DNA of 64,000 nucleotides. It comes from Corallochytrium limacisporum Hawaii (lineage: Eukaryota; Protista; Pluriformea). Position numbers and translations under genes: made by a program. The notes under the pieces are model-generated. The model saw only the letters and a list, made by a program, of their open reading frames with translations. It was not told the DNA's origin and did not search any database. Positions 31,765 through 38,112 of this stretch are shown here, piece after piece. Positions within the stretch are counted from its first letter, which is position 1. Each line of letters begins with the position of its first letter. The stretch covers positions 1-64,000 of the forward strand of contig PDIP01000024.1 in NCBI GenBank assembly GCA_002811645.1, read 5' to 3'.

Positions 31765-32124
31765 TCGCTAAGGTAGATCACCGGTAGTGCCATCCACCCA
31801 TACCCATTATCATTGTAAATTAGACTCACCTACATCATCGTCGCCATTCGCAGTGAGCTCATACTTCCCCCTCCCCCCTCCGTTTGAATTCTTCGCTCTT
31901 CCAGTCGCACCCTGCCTGTTAATTTTCCCCGAGCACCTGTCCCCTACCAGCCGCAAACGGTCGCCTGCGATGGGGCAGCTGCAGAGATCAGTGCCACAAG
32001 GTGCACATGGTACTTAACGCACAGAATGGCCCAAAACACTATGTTGGACATGAATGCGTCGTCGAAAATGACTTTGAGACGATGGGCTGCGCCTCTGTAA
32101 TCTAATCTATTTCATTTGCGGTTT

Positions 32125-32540
32125 ATGAGTATGCCTGTGTCTTCAGGAAAGACGTCGAGCCTGCAACTTTCGTACGCAACATGTACCGATCCTGAGCATC
32201 CACCACATTCAGCACTTGTAACAGAGGGTAATGAGTACTGGGTGACAACTGACCTCTATCCGCAAGCCCTTGGATTTCACGTAGATAACATCACCAACGG
32301 TGGAAAGATTGAGATTGTGAGTAGCAGAGCATTTGTGTTGAGCACGCAGAGAACAGCGGCCCCGAAGACGGTTCTGGGAAGTACGACGTGGTCTCAATAA
32401 CAACATTATCAAACGAAGGTATCGGGAAGCGGCAACAGAAGACAATCGATCTTGGAGGTGCCCTTTGGGGGAGATTGAAACTGACAATCAAGTCGGGATA
32501 CGGCCTATTCTGCGCAATCTACTCGATCGCACTCGCATAA
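32125..32540 (+). pseudogene. IFT25: IFT25 (HSPB11) homologue with a frameshift at about 32326
   Basis: First frame: SYATCTDPEHPP..EYWVTTDLYPQ (cf. ATSSDEKHPP..FWTTTGMFPQ). Second frame from 32328: SICVEH..GKRQQKTIDLGGALWGRLKLTIKSGYGLFCAIYSIALA* (cf. GQLQ..YLRFIIVSAFDHFASVHSV), ending at TAA 32538-32540. Confidence 0.8.
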
Positions 32541-33224: not shown

Positions 33225-33695
33225 CTATTCTGCAGCCTCGGTCGACATTGCGTACAGTTTTGTCCATTCTCGGGCATTAGCTAGCGCCTTTGGTTCATCA
33301 TTCTTCCAAAGGTCAGCCACATCGGTTGCAAGAGGGTCATCAGGGTTAGGTGCACTGAGTAAGGCTTGAATGGACAGGAGGACTGTTCTAATCTGCAGGG
33401 CAGGGCTCCATTTGTCCTTTAGGATGTCCAGGCAGATCCGTCCGAGTTTATCAATATTAGGATGATAGATTTTGGTCATAAAGCGCACCTTGGGAGGAGC
33501 CATTGGGTAATCCTCGGGTAAGAAAAGTTCCAGTTTGAACTTGCCACCCTCGAAAGGAGTGTCTCCAGGTCCATCCATCACGACGAGGAAGTGCCTTGCG
33601 TTGTCCTCAGCGGGTTGCGCATCGATACCCTGCACTGGCTCTGCCATCAGGCGCTGTGTTTCCTTAAGGATCCGCTTTGGGAGCATATTTGACAT
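33225..33695 (-). CDS. UBE2N: Ubiquitin-conjugating enzyme E2 N (Ubc13)
   Basis: [17 protein letters not shown]; [61 protein letters not shown]. Confidence 0.97.
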
Positions 33696-34541
33696 GATTA
33701 GTAGTGTGTGTGCAGTCTATGGGAATCCCGAATGCCCCGCTCTATACTCTTGTAGTTTATATCTCCTCTCGTGTTATGGCTTCCCCGTCCCAGTATCAAG
33801 TCTTCGGAGGTACTTATGTTCCGAATGGTTTTTTTAAATATCTGGCCAGGGTTAAGCACTGGCTTACACTTTCTCTATGCGAATTCATGTACCTTTGCGG
33901 ACGTAGGTCGGCTACGTTTCTTCAAGTATATTGGTCCCGTAAGCACACGCCCCCTGCACCACAGCGAAATGAAAACAACTCGCTCCTCTTCCTCCGCTCC
34001 CCCCGTACTAAACCATACGCATCCTGCCTAGGATCAAGAGACTGACGCTCCTTGGCGATCATCGGGAGTCTATTTTTGCCCTGCTGTCCGTTTGGGGGCT
34101 TGCGTTCGCTAAAAAGCCGTTTGCGAACTACGGTCTCCAGCTAGTCTTAACAACGGTTCCACCTGGCTTTGGGTAGGGACGGTGGAGTTCTCTCGGTTGA
34201 TTTCCAGTACTTTTCCCCCCGCCTTGCAATACCCACCGGAGGGTGGGAGGGAGTCTTACCAGCCCCGGAACACCCTCGGCGGGTCTCTTTGCTGCCAAGG
34301 TATTTGGAGATTACTTGGCAGCTGGCCTGTACTAGCAGAGCAAGACACTATTATTAATTGTCACATTCATATTGAATGATCAACATCGCGATGATGGAGA
34401 CATCATTGGATGTAAATTCCAATCTTGTTGGATGTAGGATGGGAATGCGTGATCGTGAACAGTTCCGCCGGCCTTATCTCCAAGGGGAGCCAGCCCCGAA
34501 CCAGTCGGAACGACGTTGTCGAAACCTTCGATAGGAATACC

Positions 34542-36456
34542 AGCATCTATGAAGGCTTTGATGAACCACAGGCAGCAGATGCCATGAATGAATAGGACAG
34601 TCTGATGGATGAAAGGTCCTTTAGGGAGGCTGTACAAATGAGCTATGGATCAGTCCGGCCTAGTATGCGCACAGCTACAGCTCGCAAGCAAGAGAGACTA
34701 CGTACGGGAATAAGTTCACCCAACAGTCAAGGTGATCAAGGCTTAGACCGCCCTGGAACGTCTGCAGTACGTGCAGCGGGATATAAGACGGCAAGGGACC
34801 GCCATGGTTAACTCACACGGGCAGGTCGTGGCCAGGGACCAGATCCACCCCTGATTGAGAAGCAGGATAGTGAATTTGACAAGTTAAGGAAGCTGGAACA
34901 GAAAATCATGAATTTAGTGGAAGAAAGTTTGACGGCAGAACGTCGTGGTAAGGCTCTTGAGGCTTTGGAGATGGCTCGGGAAGCCCACAAACTAGAGAAG
35001 AGCTTAAATGCCCAGAGGAAATCCCAGGAAATGAAAGTCATTGCCAATCTGGATCTCACATACTCTGTGATGTTCAATCTTGCAAAACAATACGAAGTTA
35101 ATGCTATGTATGACGAGGCTCTGCAAAGTTATCAAGCCATCCTAAGGAATGAGGCCTTCAGTAGTGTAGGTCGTCTGCGAATCAACATGGGAATATCTAC
35201 TTTACACAACAGAACTACCACAATGCCATTCGTATGTATCGCACGGCTCTTGACCTTGTGTCAGGAGCGTACAAGTACATGCGCACCAAGATAATGCGCA
35301 ATATTGGCACTTCGTTCGTGGAGTGGGGACAGTACAACGAAGCCATTGTCTCCTATGATACTATTATGAACGAGACCCCTGATTTCCGCACCGGCTTCAA
35401 CCTCATCCTGCTACGCCCTCGGTGATCGTGAACACATGAGGACTACACAGCTGCAGAAATATACGCAGACCTCGCACTGAAACATGACCGGTACAATTCA
35501 CTTGCTATGGTCAACAAGGGCAATATAAAATATGCTCAAAGGGACTTTGACGAGGCTAGGCGTTTGTACGCGCAGGCAGTCCAGAACGATCAGTCCTGTT
35601 TCGAGGGGCACTACAATCTAGGATTGGTGTACCGTCGTCTGGCACAGTTACAGAAAGCCCGTGACTGTTTTAAGACAGCGCATAGCTTGAAACGCACAAC
35701 GGTAGAACCAATTTACCAGATGGCGTGTCTCTTTGATGAAGATGGTTTGATGGATGATGCGAAGGAATGGTATGGCAAAGCACTGACCATTGTACCTACC
35801 GACGCCGGTCTGCATCAGCGTCTCGGTGACCTCTACGAGGAACTTGGAGACCTTGCCAGCGCATGTAACAGCTACTCCGAGGCCCACAAGTATAACTCTA
35901 CGGATGTGCACATCATTCATTGGCTGGCTGCCTACAGGAAGAAGACTTCGCCCAGGCCATAGAGTATTTCAAACGAGCAGCAATTGCTCAGAGTCGTGAA
36001 GTGACGTGGCGTCTGATGACTGCTGCATGCATGCGTCGCTTAGGGAATTTGCAAGGTGCCTTGGAGGAGTACAAGAGCATCGATGCGAGTTTCTCACCGA
36101 ACGTGGAGAGTCTCAAATTCATTGTGAAGTTGATGAGGGATTTGGGCCTGGACAAGCAGACTGACACCACAGCCTAGTACAAAGAATATGTGACGAAGCT
36201 GCAGCGGGCCGAAAAGTGGGCTAGGGACAACCCGAAGGTCGAGAAAGAAACCGTACTGCTGTCCTTAGGAGAGTTGAAGAAGTCGCGTCGCAATCGGCAA
36301 AAGAAAAGGCCATCAACTACGAGTATCGATGTGAACTATGCCGATCCTCTCAGTGGAGATCTTGAGGCCCCAAGTCTGGTTCAGATAACCATGAGCGGTG
36401 GCACGGCCAAAGACTTCGGCGAGACCGAGTTGGATGACAAATCGCTGCCCATGTGA
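34542..36456 (+). pseudogene. IFT88: IFT88 pseudogene (true 5' end uncertain, perhaps about 34390)
   Basis: Colinear IFT88 blocks: IYEGFD; F.EAV..SYG.RP; RPGTSAVRAAGY; LEQKIMNLVEES; NLDLTYSVMFNLAKQY; GRLRINMG/NIY; KIMRNIG..F..GQY; GDRE; YADLAL..DRYN..A.VNKGN; YNLGL; PTD; WLAAY; AIEYFKRA; W.LM.A.C.RR.GN; IDVNYADPL; DFGETELDD. Stops TAG 34593, TAA 34809, TAG 36175; frame changes at about 35191, 35411, 35440 (with deletion) and 35935. Confidence 0.93.
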
Positions 36457-36553
36457 GCAATGAGTAGTTGGATTCCTTCGGACAAACGGACGTGACAATG
36501 ATAGCACAGATCTATGACCATTTCTACGACTTTCTTTCTGATTAGTTTTGCAT

Positions 36554-37189
36554 TCAGACTTCAAACAACCCCGTCTGTGAATAGTTACCGTCGCCGGTCC
36601 GACCTAACCGCCGCCGATTTTCGGCCTTTCGACCGTTCTCGATCATGGTCTTAATATGGTCATGATCTTGTTCTTTGAGCTTCGAGTTGTTTGCAAGGGC
36701 ACTCATTTCCGCAAGGCTCTCTCGTGCTTTCTTTAGGTCCCTGTTTTCGAATACCTCTAGTTGCTCAAGGAACCCTTTGTTGGGCTGCACAAAGGGTCTT
36801 GCTGTACGGATAGCTTCGAGGACTGTCTGTACGTCATGATCTGTGGCCGCTGCAAGATATGCTATGCAGATTGTTGTGCTACGACTAATTCCCGCGATAC
36901 AATGGATTAGAATATTATTTGTACGGTCAGCAAGTCTTTGAGCATGGATCCATTTGCAGCACTTGTCGAAATGGTCAATGAGGGGCTCGAATTGGGTATC
37001 TGTTACTCGAATATTCAAGTATTGGATAGCAGCTTTGCTCGGGTCAATTCCTTCTCCTTCAAATCCGGCCCTCTCGTGAAGTGATACTATATGCGTGATC
37101 TTATAACGCCTGATTTGCTTTAAGTCTTCTGCATCCTTCAGACTACCCAGGTATATGTCGGGCAAAATCTGACTAGCTCCGTTTCCCAT
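36554..37189 (-). CDS. Atypical dual-specificity phosphatase, DUSP22/DUSP15-like (N-myristoylation motif)
   Basis: MGNGASQILPDIYLGS start; ITHIVSLH; catalytic HCIAGISRS; PNKGFLEQL. Confidence 0.9.
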   Translation of the reverse strand: MGNGASQILPDIYLGSLKDAEDLKQIRRYKITHIVSLHERAGFEGEGIDPSKAAIQYLNIRVTDTQFEPLIDHFDKCCKWIHAQRLADRTNNILIHCIAGISRSTTICIAYLAAATDHDVQTVLEAIRTARPFVQPNKGFLEQLEVFENRDLKKARESLAEMSALANNSKLKEQDHDHIKTMIENGRKAENRRRLGRTGDGNYSQTGLFEV

Positions 37190-38112
37190 AACTATTGATC
37201 ATGGAATCCATGAAACCAAGCCACAGTTGCTTCCACAGATCTTAAAATATACTGTAATCTGCGCTCCCCAAGTACAAATAGCTGCGCAATGAGCAGCCGT
37301 GTCCACGATTCCATCTACGGATGGTTTCCTGATATGTGACGGCTCGATCCTCCTCTTCCCCCTCCCCCTCCGGGGCCGAACTCTCAGCTACCGATTCCTT
37401 TATATATAACCTGAGGATCTCTCTAGGAGAGCAGGGTGGTTTCCGATTGCTTCAGTACTCCTCAATCCCGCGAGAATCCGCTGTCTGTCACTTCCCTAAT
37501 TTCGGAGTCTATTTTTGTTCCCCGTATTTTCAGCTTTCCCTTGGCGCGTGGTGGTAACTGCTCTGTTCTTTCAATTCTAACTCATTCTACCGTCGCTGGA
37601 AGCCAAGTCCATTCAGAGCCCCCCACATGCGGAGAGAAGAGCCATGGGGGTCCCTTTTTCGAAAGCAGATGCGGGGCAGGCCCATCCCCGAGACTGAACA
37701 GCTGGCTTTGTTGTAGCCAACGGCGCTTCCAAAGCTTGCAAATTGGTCACCTTCCTCGACGGTGTGCTCCCTGCCTGTAAGCCCGGAATAAGGGAAATTG
37801 CAATGGCTTTTCGGCCGGGGTGCATTGGCTTGGCTACTGCCGCCTGAGGCGCTGCTGTTGATTTACAGGTCGATGGCACTTTGCGGGTCGGAAGGGAACA
37901 ACAATGGACTGTACTCCACAAAGAAGTACCTATGGAGCAAGCGATGCTCAATTTCATAACGAGTCGTTTGTGATTGATGGTTTTTGAGAGCAGCTATAAG
38001 GTAGAGTAGGAGCTGTCAATCATTCTTACCTTTACTGTCAGGAAAGGAACTTTTATTTTTGTTTTTTTTGGAATTTTGGGCCCTGGGATAGAAAGCAGAC
38101 AATTACTGAATC

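Follow-up and report, generated by a model that had tools for sequence, protein, structure and literature searches.

A probable unitary IFT88 pseudogene, presumably decaying since flagellum loss, in Corallochytrium limacisporum

The IFT88 locus and its lesions

The window, that is, the whole stretch of DNA that was analysed (64,000 nucleotides; positions 1 to 64,000 of the forward strand of contig PDIP01000024.1, assembly GCA_002811645.1, Corallochytrium limacisporum Hawaii), contains on its + strand, at 34476-36456, one colinear homologue of IFT88, a protein required for flagellum building. We read the locus by three-frame translation of positions 34300-36500, which gave one reading hopping across frames. 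A tblastn search of the window using the full-length IFT88 orthologues P0056 (780 aa) and P0078 (843 aa) as queries yielded four colinear + strand pieces (frame 0: 34596-35192; frame 2: 35189-35410 and 35441-35935; frame 1: 35941-36306) with 38-55% identity, so that the short + strand ORFs do join into a single IFT88, as the first-pass annotation of this DNA had proposed. Three of the pieces were searched separately against PDB sequences and matched chain 8bd7_A in order (residues 121-228, 230-301 and 458-617); this chain, deposited as IFT88, was the top or sole match for two of the three.

We then joined the pieces with an X at every break and aligned them with six orthologues using MAFFT. 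Colinearity holds throughout this alignment, from the N-terminal motif as far as the C-terminal "LP" end, and the match extends to a final "LPM" and a TGA stop at 36454-36456. The joined reading served for comparisons with the orthologues, all database searches being run on unjoined, unrepaired sequence. The profiles TPR_1, TPR_2 and TPR_8 exceed the Pfam cut-offs in the IFT88 pieces; there is no IFT88-specific Pfam family, and Pfam backs the TPR assignment only, the name IFT88 coming from the names of PDB chains. A protein search using a 164-aa piece as a query was dominated by generic TPR proteins, and the matches were to IFT88 only where one to three stretches together spanned the entire query; it also retrieved proteins of 675-843 aa, P0056 and P0078 among them, that cover the query whole and whose sequences are plainly IFT88. 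Over aligned columns the locus is 31-39% identical to the six orthologues, and functional IFT88s are 33-58% identical among themselves. The locus is colinear with IFT88 over its whole length and matches it better than generic TPR proteins, and it retains a TPR solenoid with the conserved motifs at both ends.

From 5' to 3', all on the + strand, the lesions and the pieces between them are as follows, the two strains compared being represented by the contigs X3 and X4 described below. The N-terminal piece (34476-34592, frame 0) bears the conserved "D-x-Y-x-G-F" type motif; the open stretch of frame 0 starts no earlier than 34416 and has no ATG before 34587, a lesion absent from the first-pass list. 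An in-frame TAG (34593-34595), common to both strains without difference in X3 and X4, separates it from a second frame 0 piece (34596-34808), aligned from P0078 residue 26. An in-frame TAA (34809-34811), found in both strains and in the marine-metagenome contig X5, is followed by a frame 0 piece (34812-35191) matching 8bd7_A residues 121-228. A 1-bp deletion in a run of A (35191-35192), present in the window strain only, changes the frame from 0 to 2 and leads into a TPR piece in frame 2 (35192-35408) matching residues 230-301 of the same chain.

A second frameshift (35406-35409, frame 2 to 0) lies between "...FNLI" and "CYALGDREHM", and coincides with the left edge of a 369-bp deletion of X4 (35409-35777). 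The ten-codon remnant "CYALGDREHM" (35409-35438, frame 0), recognised by translation and alignment, abuts an internal deletion junction (35439-35441) that is out of frame (0 to 2) and lacks about 150 codons, the missing block corresponding to P0078 residues ~310-461 and to 8bd7_A residues ~302-457. Beyond it, a TPR piece in frame 2 (35441-35932) matches 8bd7_A residues 458-617 and ends at a frameshift from frame 2 to 1 (35933-35936) between "WLAAY" and "QEEDF"; this shift is common to both strains, and the X4 contig spans it without a gap. The C-terminal TPR piece in frame 1 (35935-36174), delimited by alignment with the orthologues, is cut by an in-frame TAG (36175-36177), again common to both strains, and the C-terminal tail (36178-36456, frame 1) ends in a conserved "LP-x" and the original TGA.

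The three stops lie exactly where the first-pass annotation had placed them, its three frameshifts (about 35191, 35411 and 35935) resolve to the intervals above, and its junction near 35440, thought to skip roughly 140 residues, is real and skips about 150 by alignment. It had also described the large neighbouring ORFs as free of lesions, and those of 1076, 1210, 1266 and 979 aa indeed run without interruption. An alternative genetic code was considered and rejected: the standard code gives normal readings of the neighbours, and the stops come together with frameshifts.

The locus thus resembles functional IFT88, such as that of Chlamydomonas in the IFT-B train structure 8bd7 or animal IFT88/Polaris, in its full-length colinearity, N-terminal motif, TPR arrays and C-terminal end of "LLPE" type. 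Unlike these proteins, it is interrupted by three premature stops and no fewer than three frameshifts, misses the deleted block of about 150 codons and lacks a start codon. Because an uninterrupted ORF is missing, we file the locus as IFT88-derived; as read from its sequence, it would encode no functional member of the family.

Flagellar genes in the rest of the genome

Several other IFT-B genes carry breaks in the assembly, where alone they were read. IFT54 (C7:75961-76277, - strand) has a frame change inside its CH domain, with overlapping matches. IFT46 (C88:~255000-255492, + strand) is open only in its C-terminal third, with a frameshift just upstream, stops before that and a decayed N-terminal part. 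IFT57 (C143:188816-189830, - strand) has one frame change, where only 13 nt separate GT from AG, too little for an intron. Judged by these breaks, all three look disabled. In the window as assembled, an IFT25/HSPB11-like gene (32116-32540, + strand) has a frameshift near 32370-32390. This gene is upstream of IFT88 at a distance of about 2 kb, and the DPH4-like and UBC13-like genes that separate the two are live.

Domain searches of the draft assembly gave no match for tektin, the radial-spoke head, BBS5, the IFT81 CH domain or Cluap1/IFT38. IFT172 and IFT80 were not found either, the IFT80/IFT172 TPR families matching only IFT-A proteins in this genome. CFAP20-type domains do occur in intact ORFs (C246:160745-161263, + strand; C171:237743-238255, - strand); they lie within ORFs of 2245 aa and 679 aa and were rejected as canonical CFAP20, which has ~190 aa.

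A search of the genome with DHC_N2 returned one intact dynein heavy chain ORF of 4907 aa, presumably cytoplasmic dynein 1. The only other trace of a dynein heavy chain is an axonemal fragment (C261:50910-51308; L020:8671-9252; - strand) with an internal TAG, whose best PDB matches are DNAH2 and inner-arm I1-beta and whose motor domain should lie where an opposite-strand gene now sits. For neither axonemal nor IFT dynein did the genome yield an intact heavy chain. These absences and breaks are consistent with the flagellar apparatus being gone, absence from a draft genome being no proof. The ciliary gene set, which the first-pass annotation had singled out as bearing on its claim of flagellum loss, is broken at IFT25, IFT46, IFT54 and IFT57, and many of its other members were not detected.

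The IFT-A genes are in a different state. Long intact ORFs encode IFT122 (C88:229405-232968, + strand, 1187 aa, E = 1.5e-205 to 8bda_L), IFT121/WDR35 (C173, L021:2213-6583, - strand, 1457 aa, full Pfam architecture, E ~1e-123) and IFT144/WDR19 (C177, L022:2172-7712, - strand, 1847 aa, E = 2e-94), their E-values against solved IFT-A chains ranging from 1e-205 to 2e-94. Two further ORFs are assigned tentatively, their family matches being weak or covering part of the length: an IFT140-like ORF of 1240 aa with weak resemblance (C25, L023:3671-7390, - strand) and an IFT139-like ORF of 1629 aa with an IFT139-like C-terminus (C49, L019:1752-6638, + strand).

Together the IFT-A genes amount to about 22 kb of open frame with zero lesions, against at least seven lesions in the 2 kb of IFT88. 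Such a difference would be very unlikely were both evolving under equal neutrality, and it argues that IFT-A is still under selection. Since the IFT-A genes are intact, decay of the ciliary genes appears non-uniform, and not every "ciliary" gene would be free to decay. The odds seem to us evenly balanced that selection keeps IFT-A intact in a genome whose IFT-B, axoneme genes and axonemal and IFT dyneins have died or disappeared. In the published pattern, as summarised in PMC5654045 (van Dam et al., 2013), IFT-A and the BBSome are lost and IFT-B is retained, for example in Thalassiosira. C. limacisporum agrees with the modular loss outlined in that summary, in that IFT subcomplexes are lost as modules rather than singly, and reverses its direction, IFT-B and BBS5 being gone or broken and IFT-A kept. 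Our literature search for IFT-A-only organisms returned nothing useful. No such organism is known to have been described.

The same ORFs give some standing to the idea that the organism kept its flagellum, as a reduced or IFT-B-independent cilium built on intact IFT-A, and that IFT88 alone became dispensable: IFT122, IFT121 and IFT144 match at the E-values given above, and the IFT140-like and IFT139-like ORFs are open too. However, such a cilium would have to do without an intact axonemal or IFT dynein heavy chain and without tektin, the radial-spoke head, BBS5, the IFT81 CH domain, IFT38, IFT172 and IFT80, none of which was found, and a preprint on C. limacisporum's life cycle by live imaging never mentions a flagellum (zero occurrences of "flagell"). 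We regard a retained cilium as improbable to a high degree.

Copy number, gene model and independent sequences

To look for a second IFT88, we searched all 286 contigs of the assembly (24,109,830 bp) in six frames. None was found, the remaining matches to IFT88 being generic TPR proteins with 24-27% identity. An intact paralogue, which the first-pass annotation had named as a possible objection, is therefore missing from the 24.1-Mb assembly, an incomplete draft about 83% BUSCO-complete (Grau-Bove et al., 2017, PMC5560861); given this completeness, an intact copy may lie in unassembled DNA, and an intact minor allele or a rare spliced isoform may exist unseen at the contig level.

A public protein model of 324 aa (P0001) is 100% identical to the locus over its match and is evidently an annotation of it. 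Its three + strand exons (34908-35165, 35441-35905 and 36205-36453) are joined by two GT..AG "introns" (35166-35440 and 35906-36204), which cover conserved IFT88 coding sequence and are retained in the X3 contig. As far as the sequence tells, the model is a gene-finder's detour around the frameshifts, its introns artificial. In presence/absence surveys, P0001 would score as "IFT88 present".

The lesions were checked in assembled contigs from four studies, which provide contig-level evidence rather than raw reads. X1 contigs are identical at the locus, X1 being the probable source of the assembly. X3 contigs (2015, another study) are identical over 34344-37200, with no joints and unspliced, and leave intergenic positions 33870-34343 uncovered. 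The X3 contig over the UBC13-like gene (33225-33695, - strand) carries, on the gene's 5' side beyond 33835, 20 T's (+ strand) that are not genomic, probably a cDNA library artefact that served just as a hint of RNA origin. Because the intergenic gap is uncovered and a non-genomic homopolymer tail is present, X3 is probably cDNA-derived and the locus probably transcribed, unspliced; the RNA status of both X3 and X4 is a tool's guess.

X4 (2015, a third study) comes from a different strain, 17 SNPs away in 4 kb, and retains all three stops and the 35934 shift. At 35191 it has an extra A and reads "MGNIYF" like the orthologues; since this restores the frame, the frameshift of the window strain is a young 1-bp deletion. 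X4 lacks 35409-35777 (369 bp), with ends TG..CA and no microhomology; because these ends are not intron-like, the gap is X4's own deletion rather than an intron. The marine-metagenome contig X5 (2023, 151 nt) agrees with the window throughout 34666-34816, TAA included. Being common to both strains, four lesions (the three stops and the 35934 shift) predate the strain split, and at least two are younger and strain-specific (the window strain's 35191 deletion and X4's deletion of 369 bp). Old common lesions together with young private ones are the pattern expected of a neutrally decaying gene.

Both strain-specific indels fall within the 2 kb of IFT88 and none in flanking genes. Coding SNPs between the strains number 6 nonsynonymous and 3 synonymous at IFT88, a ratio compatible with neutrality in a sample of 9 that is too small to say more; in the same comparison, the intact phosphatase gene next door gives 3:1 nonsynonymous to synonymous. 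At columns invariant in the six orthologues the locus keeps 76% of the residues, against 78-95% in real orthologues, and its changes are more radical.

It is slightly less probable even than a retained cilium that introns or programmed recoding allow a shortened functional TPR protein, such as the 324-aa model, to be made. The model does span the locus with GT..AG boundaries, and the locus is present in probable RNA contigs. Yet the putative introns align codon for codon with conserved IFT88 and stay unspliced in the X3 contig; the sole skip, in X4, has TG..CA ends and other coordinates; the frames abut or overlap at 35191, 35407 and 35934, leaving no room for an intron; and the predicted protein would miss more than half of the IFT88 TPR solenoid.

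Least credible of all, and already largely refuted, is that the natural gene is intact and that faulty sequencing, faulty assembly or mutation in laboratory culture produced the lesions. The assembly is indeed a short-read draft of 286 contigs, and the 35191 frameshift does fall within a homopolymer and is missing in the other strain. But runs of two other studies reproduce the lesions, with X3 identical throughout and X4 keeping the three stops and the 35934 shift at a distance of 17 SNPs, the 2023 marine-metagenome contig has the TAA, and the window's ORFs of 1000-1266 aa are free of lesions. An intact ORF in other runs, which the first-pass annotation had likewise raised as an objection, did not turn up among these contigs.

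Decay after flagellum loss and its significance

Taken together, we consider it very probable that the locus is a unitary IFT88 pseudogene, transcribed unspliced and unable to encode IFT88, and that it has been decaying neutrally since flagellum loss. We infer that the loss of the flagellum is the cause of the decay. The ancestor that C. limacisporum shared with flagellated Syssomonas would have carried a motile flagellum, an ancestral motility that the I1-beta dynein fossil supports. The lineage would then have given up flagellum building; once the flagellum was abandoned, constraint on IFT88 would have been lost and the IFT-B genes would have turned neutral, and stops, small indels and deletions would have accrued in IFT88 by neutral decay.

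With three stops and few indels over its 2 kb, IFT88 would, as a rough estimate, have diverged neutrally by only a few percent. The decay of IFT88 would then, again roughly, lie several-fold beyond the strain divergence of about 0.4-0.6%. The first-pass annotation had spoken of a recent loss of the flagellum; the still readable gene and the broken ciliary set agree with this, and because the shared lesions predate the strain split, the loss is "recent" only when set against the lineage's age.

The decay of flagellar genes after flagellum loss is a known kind of event. In the oomycete Hyaloperonospora arabidopsidis, as reported by Judelson et al. (2012, PMC3471859), a lineage with flagellated relatives likewise stopped making flagella, and its compact, intron-poor genome likewise holds disabled but recognisable flagellar gene remnants amid housekeeping genes that are intact. 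Unlike the case described there, C. limacisporum is a holozoan, its decay is polymorphic between two strains, and IFT-A is intact beside dead IFT-B.

A cryptic flagellated stage has been predicted for C. limacisporum (Torruella et al., 2015, as relayed by secondary sources). A sole IFT88 copy that is broken in two strains argues against a hidden flagellated stage inferred from gene hits. The warning of the first-pass annotation, that such fragments could lead to a cryptic flagellated stage being wrongly inferred, is apt, since just such an inference is in the literature for this species. In the searchable literature, we found nothing linking C. limacisporum to flagellar pseudogenes or to IFT88.

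At least one key flagellar gene counted as "present" would thus be a pseudogene that is transcribed and that transcriptome homology searches, or patched models such as P0001, would count as present, so that presence/absence tables of flagellar genes need re-scoring for gene integrity. The statement on a cryptic flagellum feeds reconstructions of the unicellular ancestor of animals, and the locus would correct an inference published for one of the close relatives of animals. As an instance of how a gene decays once an organelle is lost, it is moreover dated and polymorphic. An intact IFT-A in a genome without a usable IFT-B was unexpected; if selection does keep it, IFT-A would have a role independent of cilia, such as that of a coatomer-like coat in membrane traffic, and C. 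limacisporum would provide a natural setting in which to study it.
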